Shown piece by piece: positions 1-34,020 of a DNA stretch of 39,534 nucleotides (its first letter is position 1; each line of letters opens with the position of its first letter). Made by a program: the position numbers and the translations under genes. The DNA lies in NCBI RefSeq assembly GCF_001194135.2, contig NC_069000.1, positions 14,123,722 to 14,163,255 on the forward strand, read 5' to 3'. Source of the DNA: Octopus bimaculoides (taxonomy: Eukaryota). The notes beneath the pieces are model-generated. The model did no database searches. It was not told the origin of the DNA and saw only the letters and a list, made by a program, of their open reading frames with translations.

Positions 1-345
1 TATATGTACACATATATATATATGTATATGTACACATATATATATATATGTATATGTACACATATATATATATGTATATGTACACATATATATATATGTA
101 TATGTACACATATATATATATGTATATGTACACATATATATATATGTATATGTACACACATATATATATGTATATGTACACACATATATATATGTATATG
201 TACACATATATATATGTATATGTACACATATATATATGTATATGTACACATATATATGTATATGTACACATATATATATGTATATGTACACATATATATA
301 TATGTGTGTGTGTATATATGTATGTATATGTGTGTATGCATGTAT
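1..345. repeat. TA-rich compound minisatellite (unit ~22-26 nt, TATATGTACACATATATATATATG)
   Basis: Unit repeated about 12 times from base 1, grading into (TG)/(TA). Confidence 0.95.
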
Positions 346-390
346 TTATTCCAACATTTATCTCTTTCTCTGTATCATACATTTCTCATA

Positions 391-414
391 TTTTTTTTCT
401 TTCTTTTTTTCTAG
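391..414 (+). promoter_or_regulatory. 3' splice acceptor upstream of the alpha-kinase-like CDS
   Basis: Polypyrimidine tract ttttttttctttctttttttctAG ends at 414; ATG follows 11 nt later in atcATGG context. Confidence 0.75.
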
Positions 415-425
415 GTTATCCCATC

Positions 426-1334
426 ATGGATAATGAAACACTCTCATTTCAATATAACAACGAGAATTACTTTGCAAATTTTTCATATAAACCTTCCGTG
501 ATAACAAAGGATTATCTTCTCTACGATGGAGTTCTTAATGGCTCTGGAATACATCGTGGAAACAGGTGCATTATTCGTGTTTTGAAAACCAAACCTCACT
601 CTAAAAATGCTTGGAAATCATATCTTAACACCAGAGCATTACTTCATAAAGCCAAATCTTATTTTGTATCTCGCTCTGACGTGGAATTTTTTCAAGTTCC
701 AGATTATACCGAAGCACTAATTGACAGAATCTCTCTTATTACAAAATTCACTGTCTCAAGACACCCTGTTCCTGATGAGACTGTACTTATTGATCACTAC
801 AAAGGTGCACATGGAGAAGAAAAATTAACAAGTCCAAGTCTTGATGCTATTTCTCATTTCACTTTCTTAGAATCCAAAGGACAAACAATACTGACCAATT
901 TCCAAGGATTTCGAATTAACAGAAAGACTATTTGTATTACTGGTGCAGATTGCGTTGCTATAAATGCTGAAACTTTCTTAAAGCAACATAAATGCAATAA
1001 ACACTGTAAAATATTACAGAATGTACCTCAGCTAATACCACAAGTGACTTATATACAAGACAAGAATCAAGCACCTAGTTACCATAGCATCGTAACAGCA
1101 AGAGCTAGTCTGCCACACATAATGTATGGTCATTACATTTGTGATCATTGTGATATATATAATCATGGTGGCATGTATAATCACTGTGGCAGTTATAATC
1201 ATTGTGCAGTGTATAACCATACAGCTTTAATGCATTCTTCAAGCGTGCAAGAGAGAGAAACATTTGGACATCTTCATCTTCGACCAGAGCCATCAGCTCC
1301 GCCATTTGATGAAGTCTTTTATAGAGCTTCTTAA
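426..1334 (+). CDS. Alpha-kinase (eEF2K/MHCK/TRPM7/ALPK family) domain protein, probable pseudokinase, 302 aa, single coding exon
   Basis: Complex open frame. LDAISHFTFLESKGQTILTNFQG matches the alpha-kinase AFSHFTYExSxxxLLVxDLQG motif; FLKQHKCNKHCKIL matches FxxxHxCNxxCxxL; RCIIRVLK matches CVVKxFK. Confidence 0.85.
   Translation: MDNETLSFQYNNENYFANFSYKPSVITKDYLLYDGVLNGSGIHRGNRCIIRVLKTKPHSKNAWKSYLNTRALLHKAKSYFVSRSDVEFFQVPDYTEALIDRISLITKFTVSRHPVPDETVLIDHYKGAHGEEKLTSPSLDAISHFTFLESKGQTILTNFQGFRINRKTICITGADCVAINAETFLKQHKCNKHCKILQNVPQLIPQVTYIQDKNQAPSYHSIVTARASLPHIMYGHYICDHCDIYNHGGMYNHCGSYNHCAVYNHTALMHSSSVQERETFGHLHLRPEPSAPPFDEVFYRAS
1125..1229 (+). repeat. In-frame 18-nt coding repeat (YNHxxx x4, preceded by YGH and CDH)
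   Basis: TATAA(T/C)CA(T/C) at 1158, 1176, 1194 and 1212 (period 18). Confidence 0.9.
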
Positions 1335-2243
1335 AACAGTAGCAACACAAATTTTCCATTTATGCAGTGGAAATTAAAATTTGAACAGCTACAACTAATT
1401 CTGGCTTAGCTATAAGTTTTAAACAAGGGATTTTCTGTTACAGAATTCCACTGGCTACACAGAAAACAAAGCAAAATTATTAGTGCTATCTTTTGCAGCA
1501 TACTTTTTTTTATGCCAAAGCTGCTTCAGACAACAAGATAGCCAACAGTCTGCGGGTCTCCCTTCATTTAGTTCAAGCTTGAGAGTTGTAGATGCAATAT
1601 CTTTTATGATAATATGCTGTCACAAGGGTTTGTAAGGTGACTTACAACTTTCACGAAAACCAAAAGCAATTAACATGCTAATTATTTACGGAAGAAAACA
1701 ATTTCATTACTGGTGAGTTTGACATTGTTCTAGATGTTTTACTTTGTCAAAATTGTTTAGAGAAGCTACAGCTAAAACATAAGAGGGACTTGTTACCAGA
1801 CCTAATGCAGAAGAATGAGTGGTTGCCAGACGTTTCCCTTCCTTTCAGTTAATTGCTGGGATATATTTGTATTGGCTTCAGAAGATTAAAAACTTAAGCT
1901 GTGCCAATGTTGAACTCTCATCATAATATTACAAAGCTCATATGATGTGGCTTCGCGTAAGCTACCTTTTTGACTGCAAGTCTACATTAAGCAATGCTAC
2001 TGAAATTCTGAGAGGGAGAAAGGAGAAAGATAAAGTGAGAGTGAAAGAGAGAGAGAAGGCTCACAATTATTTACATGCGGGTTTCTGAAAACCAATATCT
2101 GTAAAATCAATATCTGTAAAATCAATATAAATATTTGTGGGAATAGTGTTATTGATATTGACAAATCAGAACAAAAACTGAACATCCAAAAATAAAAATA
2201 TTTGTAAATACATAGAATTTGTTTTCAGTTGTCTTTCTTTTTT

Positions 2244-2923: not shown

Positions 2924-3982
2924 TTATTTATTTATGTGTTTCAGCCAAGGTCATGCTGGTGCACCACCGTGATTTTCACGCTCCTCGCATGGCTCTTCTC
3001 CCCCACCTGACATGGTCCAATCAAGAGTTTTAATGGCATATATATATATGTATGTNNNNNNNNNNNNNNNNNNNNNNNNNNNNNNNNNNNNNNNNNNNNN
3101 NNNNNNNNNNNNNNNNNNNNNNNNNNNNNNNNNNNNNNNNNNNNNNNNNNNNNNNNNNNNNNNNNNNNNNNNNNNNNNNNNNNNNNNNNNNNNNNNNNNN
3201 NNNNNNNNNNNNNNNNNNNNNNNNNNNNNNNNNNNNNNNNNNNNNNNNNNNNNNNNNNNNNNNNNNNNNNNNNNNNNNNNNNNNNNNNNNNNNNNNNNNN
3301 NNNNNNNNNNNNNNNNNNNNNNNNNNNNNNNNNNNNNNNNNNNNNNNNNNNNNNNNNNNNNNNNNNNNNNNNNNNNNNNNNNNNNNNNNNNNNNNNNNNN
3401 NNNNNNNNNNNNNNNNNNNNNNNNNNNNNNNNNNNNNNNNNNNNNNNNNNNNNNNNNNNNNNNNNNNNNNNNNNNNNNNNNNNNNNNNNNNNNNNNNNNN
3501 NNNNNNNNNNNNNNNNNNNNNNNNNNNNNNNNNNNNNNNNNNNNNNNNNNNNNNNNNNNNNNNNNNNNNNNNNNNNNNNNNNNNNNNNNNNNNNNNNNNN
3601 NNNNNNNNNNNNNNNNNNNNNNNNNNNNNNNNNNNNNNNNNNNNNNNNNNNNNNNNNNNNNNNNNNNNNNNNNNNNNNNNNNNNNNNNNNNNNNNNNNNN
3701 NNNNNNNNNNNNNNNNNNNNNNNNNNNNNNNNNNNNNNNNNNNNNNNNNNNNNNNNNNNNNNNNNNNNNNNNNNNNNNNNNNNNNNNNNNNNNNNNNNNN
3801 NNNNNNNNNNNNNNNNNNNNNNNNNNNNNNNNNNNNNNNNNNNNNNNNNNNNNNNNNNNNNNNNNNNNNNNNNNNNNNNNNNNNNNNNNNNNNNNNNNNN
3901 NNNNNNNNNNNNNNNNNNNNNNNNNNNNNNNNNNNNNNNNNNNNNNNNNNNNNNNNNNNNNNNNNNNNNNNNNNNNNNNNNN

Positions 3983-4009
<27 letters not shown>

Positions 4010-4019
<10 letters not shown>

Positions 4020-4160
4020 GACGAGTTTCTTTCAGTTTCCGTCCACCAAATGCACTCACAAGGCTTTGGATAAACTGAGGTTATAGCAGCAGATGCTTAC
4101 CCAATCCAGAATCATGTGGTTGGGAAGCAAGCTTCTTACCACAGAGCCATGCCTGCGCCT
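4010..4160 (-). mobile_element. SINE family B 5' half
   Basis: acgacgagtttctttcagtttccgtccaccaaatgcactcacaaggc...gcttcttaccacagagccatgcctgcgcct. Confidence 0.8.
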
Positions 4161-14023: not shown

Positions 14024-15122
14024 AAGTAAAAAAAAAAAAAAACTACCAAAAATAAGCAACATATTTCAGGGATATATAATTGTGAACAAAAGTCATCGTT
14101 GCTGTGATGGCTACATCGTGATAGGTTGATTCTTGTTTATTTTTATATATCTTGACCATACGTGTACTGATGAACAAAAGAATACAGGTTACTTCACNNN
14201 NNNNNNNNNNNNNNNNNNNNNNNNNNNNNNNNNNNNNNNNNNNNNNNNNNNNNNNNNNNNNNNNNNNNNNNNNNNNNNNNNNNNNNNNNNNNNNNNNNNN
14301 NNNNNNNNNNNNNNNNNNNNNNNNNNNNNNNNNNNNNNNNNNNNNNNNNNNNNNNNNNNNNNNNNNNNNNNNNNNNNNNNNNNNNNNNNNNNNNNNNNNN
14401 NNNNNNNNNNNNNNNNNNNNNNNNNNNNNNNNNNNNNNNNNNNNNNNNNNNNNNNNNNNNNNNNNNNNNNNNNNNNNNNNNNNNNNNNNNNNNNNNNNNN
14501 NNNNNNNNNNNNNNNNNNNNNNNNNNNNNNNNNNNNNNNNNNNNNNNNNNNNNNNNNNNNNNNNNNNNNNNNNNNNNNNNNNNNNNNNNNNNNNNNNNNN
14601 NGTGTTCTGTATATGTGTATGTGTGTTGTCGTCACGGAAGCTATGTATTTTTTTCGTGAAGAAATAACAAAAAATTGCGTTTAATCGTTTAAATGGAGGT
14701 CCAAATGTCACAAAAGTTTGTACTGCACTACCGAAGGTAAGTAGGAAAATAAGTATGTAAAAAGAAAATTAAGATAAGATATACTTTTTCTGAGATATTT
14801 CAGTTACACACAAACATCCCTAGAGTTCTAGTATTATCAAGATATGCATGTGTGTGTGTGTATGTGTGTGTGTGTGTGTGTGTATAGTAAAAGACACTTG
14901 CACAACGTGTTATGCATTCGACTAAACCCGTATGTATTTGTGTGTAGATAGATAGATAGATAGATATAAAACAAAACAAAAAATGGAACAAGAACGTAAC
15001 AGGTGACAACAAAACATTCGAACAGTTAGACGATAAAAAAAAAGGACAGGAAAAAACAAGAACGGGTTATTCGGAGCTTTCAATCTTCAGTCGAGTACCA
15101 GATCGTCTTTGCAGTTTCGGCC

Positions 15123-21876: not shown

Positions 21877-22450
21877 CAAGCTGGTGCTTCAGCATGGCCG
21901 CAGTCCAATGAGGGAAACAAGTAATAGAATGTGAGTTAAAGTATATTAAATCCTCCTCTCCCGTTTGACAACCCGAATATANNNNNNNNNNNNNNNNNNN
22001 NNNNNNNNNNNNNNNNNNNNNNNNNNNNNNNNNNNNNNNNNNNNNNNNNNNNNNNNNNNNNNNNNNNNNNNNNNNNNNNNNNNNNNNNNNNNNNNNNNNN
22101 NNNNNNNNNNNNNNNNNNNNNNNNNNNNNNNNNNNNNNNNNNNNNNNNNNNNNNNNNNNNNNNNNNNNNNNNNNNNNNNNNNNNNNNNNNNNNNNNNNNN
22201 NNNNNNNNNNNNNNNNNNNNNNNNNNNNNNNNNNNNNNNNNNNNNNNNNNNNNNNNNNNNNNNNNNNNNNNNNNNNNNNNNNNNNNNNNNNNNNNNNNNN
22301 NNNNNNNNNNNNNNNNNNNNNNNNNNNNNNNNNNNNNNNNNNNNNNNNNNNNNNNNNNNNNNNNNNNNNNNNNNNNNNNNNNNNNNNNNNNNNNNNNNNN
22401 NNNNNNNNNNNNNNNNNNNNNNNNNNNNNNNNNNNNNNNNNNNNNNNNNT

Positions 22451-22676
22451 ATTTCAAGATCTTTATATTTGCTCAGTTTTTGGTAGGTCTTGACAGATAC
22501 GTTTATATCGATTGGGACAGACATATCAATGAGGAGGCATGATTTTTGTCTGAAGTCTTTCAATATGATGTCTGGCCTATTTGCATCTATCTTTCTGTCA
22601 GTTTGAATGGTGAAGTTCCAGAGGAGTGCGATGTGATCATTTTCAAGTACTGAGGGTGGTTTGTGTGCCTACCAGT
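22451..22676 (-). mobile_element. R4/Dong-clade non-LTR retrotransposon, restriction-like endonuclease fragment
   Basis: Minus frame HKPPSVLENDHIALLWNFTIQTDRKIDANRPDIILKDFRQKSCLLIDMSVPIDINVSVKTYQKLSKYKDLEI (RPD..D..K motif); its 5' end abuts (TAA)n at 22686-22762. Confidence 0.85.
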
Positions 22677-26939: not shown

Positions 26940-27870
26940 CCCCACAACCCATCTGTCTCTCTTCCTCCTCCTCCTCCTTTCTCATCTTTTCCTTTCACTC
27001 TCTCTTTCACTCTTTCCCTATTTTCTTTTGGCCCTCTGCTGCCACACCACTTTAGACGATTTCTCTCTCCCTCTTTGTCTCTCTTCTGTTCTCCCTCTTT
27101 CACTCTCCCCCATTTTCTTTCACCCCTCTACTCTTTAGCCATCCCATAGCATCTCTCTCTCCCTTTTCTTTCTCTCTTTCTTTCTCTTTCTCTCTCCCTC
27201 CTTCTGTCTTTCTCTCTCACTTTTCCTCTTTCACTTTCTCTCTGCTTCCTATTTTCCCCCTACGGCTTCACCACTTTATCTCTCTCTCTCTCTCTCTCTT
27301 TATCTCCCTCTTTCTCTCTCCAACTTTCTCTCCCTCTTTTTTCCTTGCTTCTCTCCCCTCTCTCTTTCTCCCTCTTTCACTCTCTCCCTATTTGTTTTTG
27401 GCCCTCTAATCTTTTGCCATCCCACAACATCTCTCTCTCTTTCTCTCTCTCTCTCCCCCCTCCCCCCCTCTCTCTCTCTCTCTCNNNNNNNNNNNNNNNN
27501 NNNNNNNNNNNNNNNNNNNNNNNNNNNNNNNNNNNNNNNNNNNNNNNNNNNNNNNNNNNNNNNNNNNNNNNNNNNNNNNNNNNNNNNNNNNNNNNNNNNN
27601 NNNNNNNNNNNNNNNNNNNNNNNNNNNNNNNNNNNNNNNNNNNNNNNNNNNNNNNNNNNNNNNNNNNNNNNNNNNNNNNNNNNNNNNNNNNNNNNNNNNN
27701 NNNNNNNNNNNNNNNNNNNNNNNNNNNNNNNNNNNNNNNNNNNNNNNNNNNNNNNNNNNNNNNNNNNNNNNNNNNNNNNNNNNNNNNNNNNNNNNNNNNN
27801 NNNNNNNNNNNNNNNNNNNNNNNNNNNNNNNNNNNNNNNNNNNNNNNNNNNNNNNNNNNNNNNNNNNNNN

Positions 27871-27933
<63 letters not shown>
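26940..27933. repeat. Polypyrimidine (CT)-rich low-complexity tract, N gap, then (TG)n
   Basis: Directly visible. Confidence 0.9.
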
Positions 27934-31900: not shown

Positions 31901-32312
31901 TATTTCATTATATTACTACAATAAAATCTATTATTTCATTATATTACTACAATAAAATTCTAAACAGAACAAACTGATACTGAAACTCGGTCGCATGAAA
32001 AAATATCTTAGTAACTAGGCGGCCATAACGCAGCTTCATCAATAGAGTTTCTCCTTCCAGCCGTCAAACAAACGATTCCATTGATATTTAAATCATAACC
32101 ACTAAACAATATGAAACGACAATCAAGCTTACAGGCAGTATTTCTATGTTCACAGTTTCATTGACATTAATACAATATGGCGGCCGCTCATTTTCATAAC
32201 CAGATCTTCTTCGGAACTGACCTAGCTATTGCTGAGACAAGGACTTTATTGAGAAGAATTATGTAAATGATAATAAATATTTTGGAGTTATAATTATATC
32301 ATTCAAAGCAGA

Positions 32313-32358
<46 letters not shown>

Positions 32359-32884
32359 NNNNNNNNNNNNNNNNNNNNNNNNNNNNNNNNNNNNNNNNNN
32401 NNNNNNNNNNNNNNNNNNNNNNNNNNNNNNNNNNNNNNNNNNNNNNNNNNNNNNNNNNNNNNNNNNNNNNNNNNNNNNNNNNNNNNNNNNNNNNNNNNNN
32501 NNNNNNNNNNNNNNNNNNNNNNNNNNNNNNNNNNNNNNNNNNNNNNNNNNNNNNNNNNNNNNNNNNNNNNNNNNNNNNNNNNNNNNNNNNNNNNNNNNNN
32601 NNNNNNNNNNNNNNNNNNNNNNNNNNNNNNNNNNNNNNNNNNNNNNNNNNNNNNNNNNNNNNNNNNNNNNNNNNNNNNNNNNNNNNNNNNNNNNNNNNNN
32701 NNNNNNNNNNNNNNNNNNNNNNNNNNNNNNNNNNNNNNNNNNNNNNNNNNNNNNNNNNNNNNNNNNNNNNNNNNNNNNNNNNNNNNNGAAATGTTTCCCA
32801 AGAAAAAAATGTAATTAACATTAGATTTTCTTTTAATTTCTTTTTCTGTATCTTTACTATATTGTTTTGTTTTGTTTTTTTCAG

Positions 32885-33784
32885 ATCAAACTAATCGGTT
32901 ACTTAAAAAAGAAATTTCAGAGATACTCTAAGAAAACATTATATTCAACACGAATCATGGAAAAAGCTCATTCGGAATTAGTTTTGTGGCAGCTTTCACA
33001 AAAATTGCTTAGTGAAAATGAAAACAAACAATTCAAATATTTTTTCACAGAATTTCAACGTAATCACTCGGTACCGATGTTATGTACTCGTTTAAAACCA
33101 CTTATTAACACATCTGAACGTCTTGTCTTACTAGTGGAAATGAGTTACCTTCTACCAAACCATCTCTCAGACGACTTTCATCGTATTTGCTCACTGGAAT
33201 TTGCCAATTATAGTCAAGCACTTCAGGCTTGTCGTCCAGGTACGTTGCCACGGATTGAGAGATCACGTGTCATCGCCCAGGACTCGTCAGGTAAAACACG
33301 TATCGTATCACAAGGTAACTTGAAGAAGCTTATTATAAACCGTTCTCCTGATTTACGGAGCAGTCATCAATCCTCATCAATGCAAAACAGCAATAAACCT
33401 TACGATGAATTTGATGATGCTGTTGAGAGTGTCTTCTTAGATAATAATATTTCACCAAAATCACACAGAAAGTTTGAAGATTATAACAATATGAGAAATT
33501 GGCAGGAAGCAGATTTAAGAACGGATTCAAGGAGGTCATCAGGTCGTAATTACAACAACGGAGTTCGTTCTAAGAGGGATGAAATAACAGTCTACGAAGA
33601 TAAAGGTTTAACTATTAGTAAAATTTCGAATAATCCTGGAGAACTTGGAAAAAAGACACATCTTATTCATTTAGTACGCCAAAGTGGAAACTGTAGTTTA
33701 GGTATGTCCCTAAAAGGTGGAATGGACGAAAATACTCCAATAACAGTGGACTGGGTCGAAGAAGGAAGTTTAGCAGATCTACAA
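32885..33784 (+). CDS. WHRN: Whirlin-like (harmonin-homology domain + PDZ1 start), 900-nt exon; likely start ATG at 32957; gene continues beyond visible exons
   Basis: Acceptor tttttttcAG|32885 and donor CAA|GTAAGT at 33785, frame open throughout. LLSENENKQF..LKPLINT..LLVEMSYLLP resembles whirlin HHD1 (LLSEAEREQF, recalled). LIHLVRQ..SLGMSLKGG..VEEGSLAD is a PDZ beta-A/GLGF loop. Exact orthology among WHRN/PDZD7/USH1C is unproven. Confidence 0.75.
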
Positions 33785-34020
33785 GTAAGTCACCATATTG
33801 ATAAACATTTTATTTCATTCGTTTTTATAATGTCATTCACTGAAAATACTTTAATTTGTTGTCATTATTTTTGTCGTATTCCACATCATTCGGGATGATT
33901 CGGGATTTGCGTATCACTTGACTAACCCTAGGTATCTCTCTCTCACACACACACACACCTTTCGGGACTTTTCTTTGTTGATATATTTTTATCTTGTTTT
34001 CATTTCTTTTTTTTTTTTTA

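Follow-up and report, generated by a model that had tools for sequence, protein, structure and literature searches.

Does a single open reading frame at the start of this stretch of Octopus bimaculoides DNA belong to a working gene, and, if so, what would an alpha-kinase-fold protein do with its active site dismantled? The window, that is, the whole stretch of DNA that was analysed, is 39,534 nucleotides long (contig NC_069000.1, positions 14,123,722 to 14,163,255, forward strand), and the initial annotation had proposed that it contains an intronless gene for a catalytically dead protein with an intact zinc site. At the gene level the following features were delimited, in window coordinates.

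426..1334, + strand: coding sequence, complete, single exon, 302 codons plus TAA
391..414, + strand: probable 3' splice acceptor of the coding exon, a polypyrimidine tract at 391-412 followed by AG at 413-414
1335..2056, + strand: probable 3' UTR, collinear with the second Octopus locus

The unbroken 302-codon frame is present as described: it runs intact from ATG to TAA at 426..1334, and a protein identical to its product is found in public collections as P0001. The G+C content is 32% over the first 2 kb of the window, at which stop codons are calculated to occur at ~7.6%, so that the chance of an open frame of 302 codons is roughly 4e-11. The term "intronless" holds for the coding sequence, which occupies one exon, but probably not for the gene, since all three octopod loci, the second Octopus locus (L002) and that of Argonauta (L001) among them, have a conserved polypyrimidine tract and AG 11-22 nt ahead of the ATG. 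Both elements are missing from mRNA-like contigs of other species (L006, L012). The acceptor implies that a non-coding 5' exon should sit upstream of the window. The coding sequence is likewise a single exon in those scallop and Physella relatives that were checked, and this arrangement is therefore a family trait and not a sign of retroposition.

The second Octopus locus aligns to window positions 228-2056, and the 3' flank (1335-1925) is 88% identical to it, above the level at synonymous sites (pS about 0.24). Microsatellites flank the coding exon. We considered contigs L002-L005 as transcript evidence and rejected them: they look genomic, as they run collinear with the genome across both the acceptor and the microsatellite that precedes it, and their ends are microsatellites. 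A scan for poly(A) signals returned 128 matches against 135 expected, Rfam and tRNA scans of the whole window gave no matches, and no further copy of the gene turned up when the window and the Argonauta locus were searched with tblastn.

The protein divides into a folded N-terminal domain, described here, and a tail that is taken up below.

426..1025, + strand: alpha-kinase-fold domain, residues 1-200, from AlphaFold2 pLDDT, Foldseek and the HMMER span
855..1007, + strand: C-lobe core with the zinc module, comprising His144 (855-857), His188 (987-989), Cys190 (993-995) and Cys194 (1005-1007)

The fold assigned from the sequence was confirmed by Pfam, by a profile search of PDB sequences and by Foldseek on a confident model, all of which agree. 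The octopus protein matches Pfam Alpha_kinase (PF02816) at 25.5 bits, above the curated cut-off of 21.3 (E 1.6e-5), with the match limited to residues 133-194 in the C-lobe (profile positions 116-185 of 185), and no Pfam domain besides Alpha_kinase was found in it. The Argonauta ortholog scores 28.9 bits, and the profile is matched by 40 of 41 relatives, the best at E 1.2e-46. These relatives were revealed by an exhaustive HMMER search, whose matches align across residues about 2-200; a word-indexed protein search gave very few. Single-sequence phmmer with the octopus protein found nothing among PDB sequences at E <= 10, and the solved alpha-kinases were reached only with a profile of the 41 sequences, which retrieved EhAK (4kuj, 1.5e-32) and MHCK A (1.7e-22) as well as eEF2K, TRPM7 and ALPK1. 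AlphaFold2 with a two-sequence alignment produced an unusable model (pLDDT 29.6); with the 41-sequence alignment, pLDDT was around 90 over residues 1-200, exceeding 90 at most of them. The best 39 PDB matches to the latter model in Foldseek are all alpha-kinase domains, with E values of 3e-7 to 5e-5, probability 1.00, 11-15% identity and TM scores of 0.45-0.55, which are lowered on the query side because the 100-residue disordered tail dilutes them.

On the best reading, the protein is a pseudokinase member of an uncharacterised family of short invertebrate "vwkA-like" alpha-kinases, with representatives in molluscs, a brachiopod and a sea star. In Dictyostelium vwkA-type kinases, the source of the name, the alpha-kinase domain is preceded by a fused von Willebrand factor A domain. 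Pfam detects no vWA domain, either in the octopus protein or among its 41 relatives; the name is due to best-hit annotation only.

The four zinc ligands are all kept, as had been proposed. His144 (in SHF), His188, Cys190 and Cys194 align to His742, His794, Cys796 and Cys800 of MHCK A and form the only invariant columns of the 41-protein alignment. The C-lobe His-His-Cys-Cys zinc module thus appears to be retained. The residues that carry out phosphotransfer in active alpha-kinases have fared differently.

576..578, + strand: codon (cgt) for Arg51, which replaces the ATP-binding Lys (MHCK A K645, TRPM7 K1646), from the family alignments
897..905, + strand: Asn158-Phe159-Gln160 in place of D-(L/I)-Q, the catalytic Asp (D756 / D1765) being replaced by Asn
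942..944, + strand: Gly173, at the metal-binding Asp of T-D-P (MHCK A D766, TRPM7 D1775), from the family alignments

Residues were mapped with two independent family alignments (A2; L-INS-i). The family profile was aligned to MHCK A, for which chain index + 534 gives K645, H742, D756, Q758, D766, H794, C796 and C800. The equivalence of MHCK A and TRPM7 residues, which we take to be established, was applied to the octopus positions. TRPM7 residue numbers hence derive from the MHCK A alignment, this equivalence and the published mutagenesis (PMC4197629). In both alignments, the octopus residues and their MHCK A counterparts are Arg51 and K645, Asn158 and D756, Gln160 and Q758, and Gly173 and D766. 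The residue numbers given initially for CIIR (R51), SHF (H144), NFQG (N158), TGAD (G173) and the remaining zinc ligands proved exact, as did each of the three substitutions read from them. The strand of the catalytic loop, NFQGFRIN, is still highly conserved, which could mean ligand binding or simply core packing. The metal-binding Gln (Q758 / Q1767) is kept as Gln160 in the three octopod sequences and lost in P0003, P0059 and P0004, while Gly173 is replaced by Glu in Argonauta and by Asn or Ser in P0003 and P0059.

The two segments reported as missing are indeed deleted when the protein is compared with MHCK A and with canonical relatives. About 12 residues are gone where MHCK A has EFKKNNSNYG and canonical relatives have KFNxNNGW (the phosphate-binding K-x-N-x-N segment), and a second deletion of about 12 residues, after Gly173, removes the Gly-rich substrate loop (G-x-x-D-x-G-x-x-G-I). 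One further loss had escaped the initial annotation: where most relatives have a basic K/R in the P-loop (R in MHCK A), the octopus protein probably has Tyr30, and Thr27 probably stands in for the loop Gly, an assignment that rests on a weak N-lobe alignment to MHCK A (domain 1 score negative). In TRPM7, activity falls below 1% with any one of the substitutions K1646R, D1765N, D1775A, R1622L, K1727A or N1731V, and to about 2% with N1795A, which affects the Gly-rich loop (PMC4197629); the D766A mutant of MHCK A, which is among the PDB matches, was deposited as an "inactive" domain (3lmi). As judged from the sequence, the octopus protein carries changes of the kind engineered to kill TRPM7, in line with the loss of catalysis first proposed, and by homology to these mutants of other alpha-kinases we infer that it is catalytically dead.

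Function rather than decay had been argued from the intact frame, and the substitution rates support it, pointing to purifying selection. Against the close Octopus relative, dN/dS is 0.19 at dS 0.28; against Argonauta, where synonymous sites are near saturation, it is at most 0.2, and 0.09 in the domain. The P0003/P0059 pair gives pN 0.30 against pS 0.76. Codons 201-302 show higher ratios (0.25-0.45) than the domain (0.09-0.17). The reading frame is intact in Argonauta and in two further species with saturated synonymous sites, and the dead configuration is conserved in three octopods and two further species, the state with Arg51, Asn158 and the loop deletions being common to P0002, P0042, P0003 and P0059. 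P0003, P0059, P0004 and P0057 are presumably from other cephalopods, since both paralog types co-occur, as in Octopus; the Logan runs concerned are SRR27666080/066/067, SRR8281674, SRR25158137, SRR20545809 and the SRR118693xx series. Orthologs are represented by mRNA-like contigs in many sequencing runs (P0060 on 117 contigs).

The remainder of the protein is a tail with conserved islands.

1041..1331, + strand: predicted disordered C-terminal tail, residues 206-302, with pLDDT <50 at 206-290 and 295-302
1080..1127, + strand: conserved tail island 1, residues 219-234 (YHSIVTARASLPHIMY), conserved between Octopus and Argonauta where the rest of the tail has diverged
1144..1220, + strand: 18-bp coding tandem repeat (TRF), 4.3 copies of Y-N-H-C-G-type units, lineage-specific
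1278..1319, + strand: conserved C-terminal linear motif, residues 285-298 (LRPEPSAPPFDEVF), with a P-S-A-P core, from the Argonauta comparison

The close Octopus relative also has the 18-bp repeat, and the Argonauta sequence does not align over this stretch. The C-terminal motif (LRxEPSAPPFDEVF), by comparison with Argonauta, is identical at 13 of 14 residues, and its PSAP (residues 289-292), which lies within the part of the tail with pLDDT <50, is conserved in orthologs; P0003 and P0059 carry an equivalent PTAP/PSAP. The ESCRT-I subunit TSG101 recognises P(S/T)AP as its consensus, and PPxY is a ligand of NEDD4-type WW domains. Across the family, P[ST]AP occurs in 18 of 41 tails (0.44 expected from shuffles) and PPxY in 16 of 41 (1.9 expected); PPxY is absent from the octopod tails and present in those of P0003 and P0059. 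The family also includes 18 members out of 41 that begin Met-Gly, an N-myristoylation-like start that the octopus protein does not have. For the octopus protein, the link to TSG101 and ESCRT is at the level of the motif, and the conserved stretch, which is longer than P(S/T)AP, could bind something else.

Given that the catalytic residues are lost yet the gene is kept by selection, the product is most likely a non-enzymatic binding or adaptor protein, of which we infer the adaptor role. It seems probable to us that this is a functional gene with a single coding exon, whose pseudokinase domain and motif-bearing tail act together as a binding module. This 302-residue cytosolic protein consists of an alpha-kinase-fold domain of ~200 residues, with its zinc-clasped C-lobe intact and the phosphotransfer machinery removed, and a disordered tail of ~100 residues. 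It would not phosphorylate; instead, a partner would dock on the conserved pseudo-active-site face (NFQGFRIN, LIDHYKGA) or on the N-terminal strand, and the tail motif would recruit other machinery.

A possible, if rather unlikely, alternative places regulation in the fold itself, with the tail secondary: the pseudokinase would act by binding a nucleotide or another small ligand that it does not turn over, or by pairing with an active or semi-active alpha-kinase paralog and controlling it allosterically. Alpha-kinase domains dimerise. The strands that line the cleft are strongly constrained despite the loss of catalysis, NFQGFRIN, LIDHYKGA and the N-terminal MDNETLSF being identical between Octopus and Argonauta, and Thr5 is nearly invariant in the 41-protein family. 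Octopus has at least one paralog (the P0058 cluster, LOC115226000) that keeps the D-x-x-G Asp and the Gly-rich loop, and the family has lost catalytic residues repeatedly while keeping the fold, which would also suit a regulator. However, all three phosphate-binding elements (the P-loop basic residue, the Lys and the K-x-N-x-N segment) have changed, which speaks against ATP being bound in the normal way, and the paralog may itself be inactive, having Arg in place of the Lys and no Asp in T-D-P.

We also speculated on a broader version of the binding-module reading, which we regard as doubtful. The octopus protein would belong to an undescribed invertebrate system in which short alpha-kinase-fold proteins, anchored at the membrane by N-myristoylation and bearing P(S/T)AP and PPxY tails, serve as ESCRT- and NEDD4-recruiting adaptors in trafficking or budding. 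Phosphotransfer would be dispensable in such a system and would have been lost many times independently, and the octopus protein, its most degraded member, would be a non-myristoylated soluble regulator or decoy.

That the protein is still an enzyme, an atypical kinase or another phosphoryl or nucleotidyl transferase using, for example, Arg51, Gln160 and the acidic residue at 175, strikes us as very improbable. Some proteins formerly termed pseudokinases have been found to be active, and weak or unusual chemistry is conceivable here given that Gln160, Gly161 and Thr172 are retained in the octopods and position 175, two residues beyond the lost Asp, is acidic in four of five orthologs (D/D/E/D). 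Five or six independent catalytic elements have nonetheless been lost together, including the catalytic base and the entire Gly-rich loop, and each equivalent single change abolishes TRPM7 activity (PMC4197629). Nor do Gln160 and Asp175 persist across the wider clade: the residues are R and Q in P0003, and P0004 carries H.

A non-functional relic or chance ORF, in the form of a decaying alpha-kinase retrocopy with its frame open by chance, would fit a single-exon coding sequence between microsatellites, the lost catalytic residues and a His/Cys/Tyr-rich tail with an 18-bp tandem repeat, but it is effectively refuted by the dN/dS of 0.19, the frames kept intact in Argonauta and two more species despite saturated synonymous divergence and the mRNA-like contigs of orthologs, and a retrocopy is rejected because the single-exon coding sequence is the family norm and the splice acceptor is conserved.

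Returning to the binding-module reading, its wider interest lies in the family. To our knowledge, only one pseudokinase has been reported in the small alpha-kinase family, vertebrate ALPK3, and that assignment is still debated. The present family suggests that the alpha-kinase fold turned non-catalytic independently and repeatedly in invertebrates, with the zinc module as the one strictly preserved feature in every case, and it therefore constitutes a natural experiment on which parts of the fold serve structure or binding and which serve chemistry. The combination of the fold, P(S/T)AP/PPxY tails and an N-terminal Met-Gly offers a testable functional lead for proteins now listed as "uncharacterized" or "vwkA-like", and annotations of cephalopod kinomes should not list these proteins among the active kinases.

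The solved active alpha-kinases MHCK A (3lkm, 4zmf), EhAK (4kuj), TRPM7 ChaK (1ia9), eEF2K (7shq) and ALPK1 (8zd3) have the same fold as the octopus protein and share with it the His/His/Cys/Cys zinc module and the G of D-x-Q-G. They keep the K, D, Q and D residues, the K-x-N-x-N segment and the Gly-rich loop, whereas the octopus protein keeps only the Q.

The short relatives, annotated as "alpha-protein kinase vwkA-like" or "eEF2 kinase" (Lingula XP_013396847.1, Acanthaster XP_022097549.1, scallops XP_021379141.1 and Physella XP_059144427.1), resemble the octopus protein in having a ~200-residue domain that starts at the N-terminus and a disordered tail, often with P[ST]AP and PPxY. Unlike it, the Lingula and Acanthaster members are canonical, with K, D, Q, D and all loops present, and many of the relatives begin Met-Gly. 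The octopod and P0003/P0059 lineage, with both loop deletions, is the most degraded in the family. Its sister group in a neighbour-joining tree, which was built without support values, is that of the Octopus paralog LOC115226000 (O. sinensis XP_029652833.1; the P0058/P0004/P0057 group). In both groups the protein starts (M)D-x-N-x-T-L-x-F, the Lys is replaced by Arg and the T-D-P Asp is gone; unlike the octopus protein, the paralog group keeps the Gly-rich loop and a longer linker between the N-lobe and C-lobe, its Octopus copy keeps the Asp in the D-x-x-G strand, and its tail is short and lacks P[ST]AP.

Among cellular P(S/T)AP/PPxY adaptors, ARRDC1 and HRS each have a disordered, P(S/T)AP-bearing tail after a folded binding domain. 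The likeness is one of working principle only, a putative binding domain with a disordered P(S/T)AP tail (and PPxY in the relatives of the octopus protein); there is no sequence or fold relationship, and the octopus motif extends past the four-residue core.

The precedent for a non-catalytic alpha-kinase domain is ALPK3, in which only four conserved residues diverge (PMC9698156). Like the octopus protein, it has substituted conserved cleft residues and is retained under selection; it is reported to be without catalytic activity and to have a localisation or scaffolding role. We rejected orthology to ALPK3 and the vertebrate ALPK2/3 group, as the octopus protein has 302 residues and an Alpha_kinase domain only, and its nearest relatives are the short invertebrate "vwkA-like" proteins. 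ALPK3 is a very large, multi-domain muscle protein that diverges at those four residues; the octopus protein, a stand-alone domain with a disordered tail, lacks the Lys, both Asp, the basic P-loop residue and two entire loops.

The octopus protein P0001 (302 residues) gives a match to PF02816 (Alpha_kinase) of 25.5 bits, above the curated threshold of 21.3, that covers residues 133-194 only. Exhaustive HMMER searching that started from the Octopus/Argonauta pair (E <= 1e-3) identified a family of 41 proteins, P0001-P0041, whose alignments span residues about 2-200; PF02816 was matched by 40 of these. Searched against solved structures, the 41-sequence profile retrieved Entamoeba EhAK (PDB ID: 4kuj, E 1.5e-32), MHCK A (1.7e-22), eEF2K (3e-22), TRPM7 (4e-20), and ALPK1 (1e-15). 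A structure model from the two-sequence alignment was useless (pLDDT 29.6), and with the 41-sequence alignment the model reached a pLDDT of about 90 over residues 1-200 and showed residues 206-302 as disordered. Foldseek analysis against the PDB returned alpha-kinase domains for all 39 best matches (MHCK A, EhAK, TRPM7, eEF2K, and ALPK1; E 3e-7 to 5e-5, probability 1.00 throughout), followed by conventional kinases at E > 0.02. Given both the PF02816 and the structural matches, the alpha-kinase fold proposed in the initial annotation is upheld.

H144, H188, C190, and C194 are the only invariant columns in the 41-sequence alignment, and they correspond to the MHCK A zinc ligands H742, H794, C796, and C800, respectively (numbered as chain index + 534, which reproduces the published numbers in the printed alignment). 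At the catalytic positions, profile columns equate R51 with K645, N158 with D756, Q160 with Q758, and G173 with D766, and a second alignment method gave the same residue states. Two deletions, each of ~12 residues, account for the missing Gly-rich loop (G-x-x-D-x-G-x-x-G-I) and for the missing counterpart of MHCK A E-F-K-K-N-N-S-N-Y-G, which reads KFNxNNGW in canonical relatives. The initial reading of an intact zinc site, of Lys to Arg51, catalytic Asp to Asn158, and TDPQ Asp to Gly173 substitutions, and of missing KYNxN and Gly-rich segments thus holds in full. The P-loop Gly is replaced by Thr27 and the P-loop basic residue by Tyr30, in a region that aligns weakly to MHCK A. Separately, Thr5 (window 438-440), part of an N-x-T pattern on the first β-strand, is at least 90% conserved in the 41-protein alignment, in active and degenerate members alike, and could be a structural residue, a dimer-exchange element, or a phosphosite.

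Mouse TRPM7 retains <1% activity with any one of the substitutions R1622L, K1646R, K1727A, N1731V, D1765N, Q1767N, or D1775A and ~2% with the Gly-rich-loop substitution N1795A (PMC4197629); the standard knock-in for a kinase-dead TRPM7 is K1646R (PMC4274504, PMC5813043). MHCK A D766A has been deposited in the PDB as an inactive domain (3lmi). The octopus substitutions coincide with such engineered kinase-dead alleles, and the protein combines natural equivalents of at least five. Judged from sequence, these data support the assignment of P0001 as a pseudokinase of the alpha-kinase fold. Some doubt about catalytic death stems from Q160, T172, and the acidic residue 175, which are kept in octopods and vary across the wider clade.

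The following features of the gene were read on the + strand.

391-414, + strand: polypyrimidine tract of 22 nt, then AG, directly upstream of the ATG
426-1334, + strand: uninterrupted frame of 302 codons, read directly from ATG to TAA as first described
1144-1220, + strand: coding 18-bp tandem repeat, 4.3 copies, with His/Cys/Tyr-rich units of the Y-N-H-(C/G)-G type

At the local composition (32% G+C), the probability that a frame stays open for 302 codons by chance is ~4e-11. For a second Octopus species, the contig L002-L005 is 87% identical to and collinear with window 228-2056, and comparison of the two genes gave dS 0.28, dN 0.055, and dN/dS 0.19 (0.17 for the domain alone). Against the Argonauta hians ortholog P0002 (51% identity), dN/dS does not exceed 0.2 over the full coding sequence and is 0.09 within the domain, with synonymous sites near saturation. 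Two further orthologs, P0003 and P0059 (pN 0.30 and a saturated pS of 0.76 between them), share with P0001 the Arg and Asn replacements, the loop deletions, and the zinc ligands. The gene is not decaying, and function is favored over decay, as originally argued; fold, lost catalytic residues, and selection together support a conserved-fold pseudokinase with probable loss of activity. The exact P0001 sequence is present in NCBI, UniRef, EukProt, and MetaClust, and no second gene copy was found in the window.

The gene had been described as intronless, which is correct for the coding sequence but probably not for the gene. The CDS lies on a single exon in the window, as it does in A. hians P0002 (one 897-nt exon) and in relatives from scallop and Physella; because the latter two share it, the single exon is a family trait, and recent retroposition was rejected as its source. 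In the window, at the second Octopus locus, and in Argonauta, a polypyrimidine tract and AG precede the ATG by 11-22 nt, so that a 5'-UTR intron, with the first exon upstream of the window, is most likely. The P0003 and P0059 contigs (L006 and L012) have long 5' leaders without a polypyrimidine-AG ahead of the ATG and therefore look like spliced mRNA; one ortholog variant was found on 117 contigs from many runs. Across the 3' flank (window 1335-1925 versus L002 1170-1765), the two Octopus species share 88% identity, above the conservation of CDS synonymous sites (pS about 0.24), a sign that the 3' UTR may be under constraint. L006 and L012 share a short conserved 3' UTR block just past the stop codon.

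The sequence around the ORF is AT-rich (32% G+C) with many microsatellites, including 13 copies of a 24-bp unit at window 1-305 that abut the probable splice acceptor of the gene; a 428-codon ORF starting at position 48 is merely read-through of this upstream microsatellite. The window assembly is a gapped draft, with long N runs flanked by TA/CA/GA microsatellites (1-349, about 2950-4060, 14200-14640, 21950-22460, 27450-27900, and 32300-32800, among many). A 343-codon ORF on the same strand (32867-33898) has the appearance of a large exon from an unrelated scaffold gene, with a weak match to harmonin-homology (CCM2_C, E 0.13). Residues about 235-281 of the query window:32951-33895 weakly resemble PDZ domains over their first half, the whirlin PDZ 1uez being one of the matches (E 0.1), and the PDZ part appears to be cut by an exon boundary.

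The predicted disordered tail (residues 206-302) evolves faster than the domain. The 18-bp repeat is present in the close Octopus relative and not alignable in Argonauta, and therefore represents a lineage-specific expansion. Within the tail, Octopus and Argonauta share two conserved islands: one at residues 219-234 and one at the C-terminus, L-R-x-E-P-S-A-P-P-F-D-E-V-F (window 1278-1319). Among family tails, taken as the sequence of P0001-P0041 beyond the C194 column, P[ST]AP occurs in 18/41 (composition-preserving shuffles: mean 0.44, maximum 4), usually with an aromatic residue and then an acidic one behind it, and PPxY in 16/41 (1.9 expected from shuffles). A Met-Gly start resembling an N-myristoylation signal (e.g. 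MGQQVS, MGNQFS) is found in 18 of the 41 proteins. Since P(S/T)AP is the ligand of the TSG101 UEV domain and PPxY that of NEDD4-type WW domains, we propose from these motifs that the protein may act as an adaptor.

Named family members come from scallops, Physella, Lingula, and Acanthaster and are labeled 'alpha-protein kinase vwkA-like', 'eEF2 kinase', or 'uncharacterized'; no vWA domain was found in the family proteins, and full-text searches for invertebrate short 'vwkA-like' proteins returned incidental mentions only. Canonical members, such as Lingula P0034 and Acanthaster P0041, have retained every loop along with K, D, Q, and D. The catalytic Asp is kept in only about a quarter of the 41 and the full K/D/Q/D set in five, counts that are biased because the search was seeded with a pseudokinase. 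In a neighbor-joining tree without support values, canonical members are basal or scattered; octopod sequences group with P0003, and the sister of this group is a second set of cephalopod paralogs (P0004/P0057/P0058), O. sinensis LOC115226000 among them. The Octopus paralog of this type, in the P0058 cluster (O. sinensis XP_029652833.1, O. vulgaris CAI9744378.1), combines an Arg in place of the Lys and the absence of the T-D-P Asp with a retained Gly-rich loop and a retained D-x-x-G strand Asp; it represents an intermediate state of degeneration and is a possible partner of the octopus pseudokinase. Given the spread of canonical members over the tree and their residue states, catalytic residues seem to have been lost several times and the zinc module never.

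Beyond the octopus gene itself, the lead of greater interest is the pattern across its family: catalytic residues lost repeatedly, a zinc site that never varies, tails with P(S/T)AP and PPxY, and Met-Gly starts. The octopus protein would be a new, independently evolved example of an alpha-kinase-fold pseudokinase. Like ALPK3, it has a pseudokinase-type alpha-kinase domain, but its architecture is unrelated to that of ALPK3 and its dismantling far more thorough.
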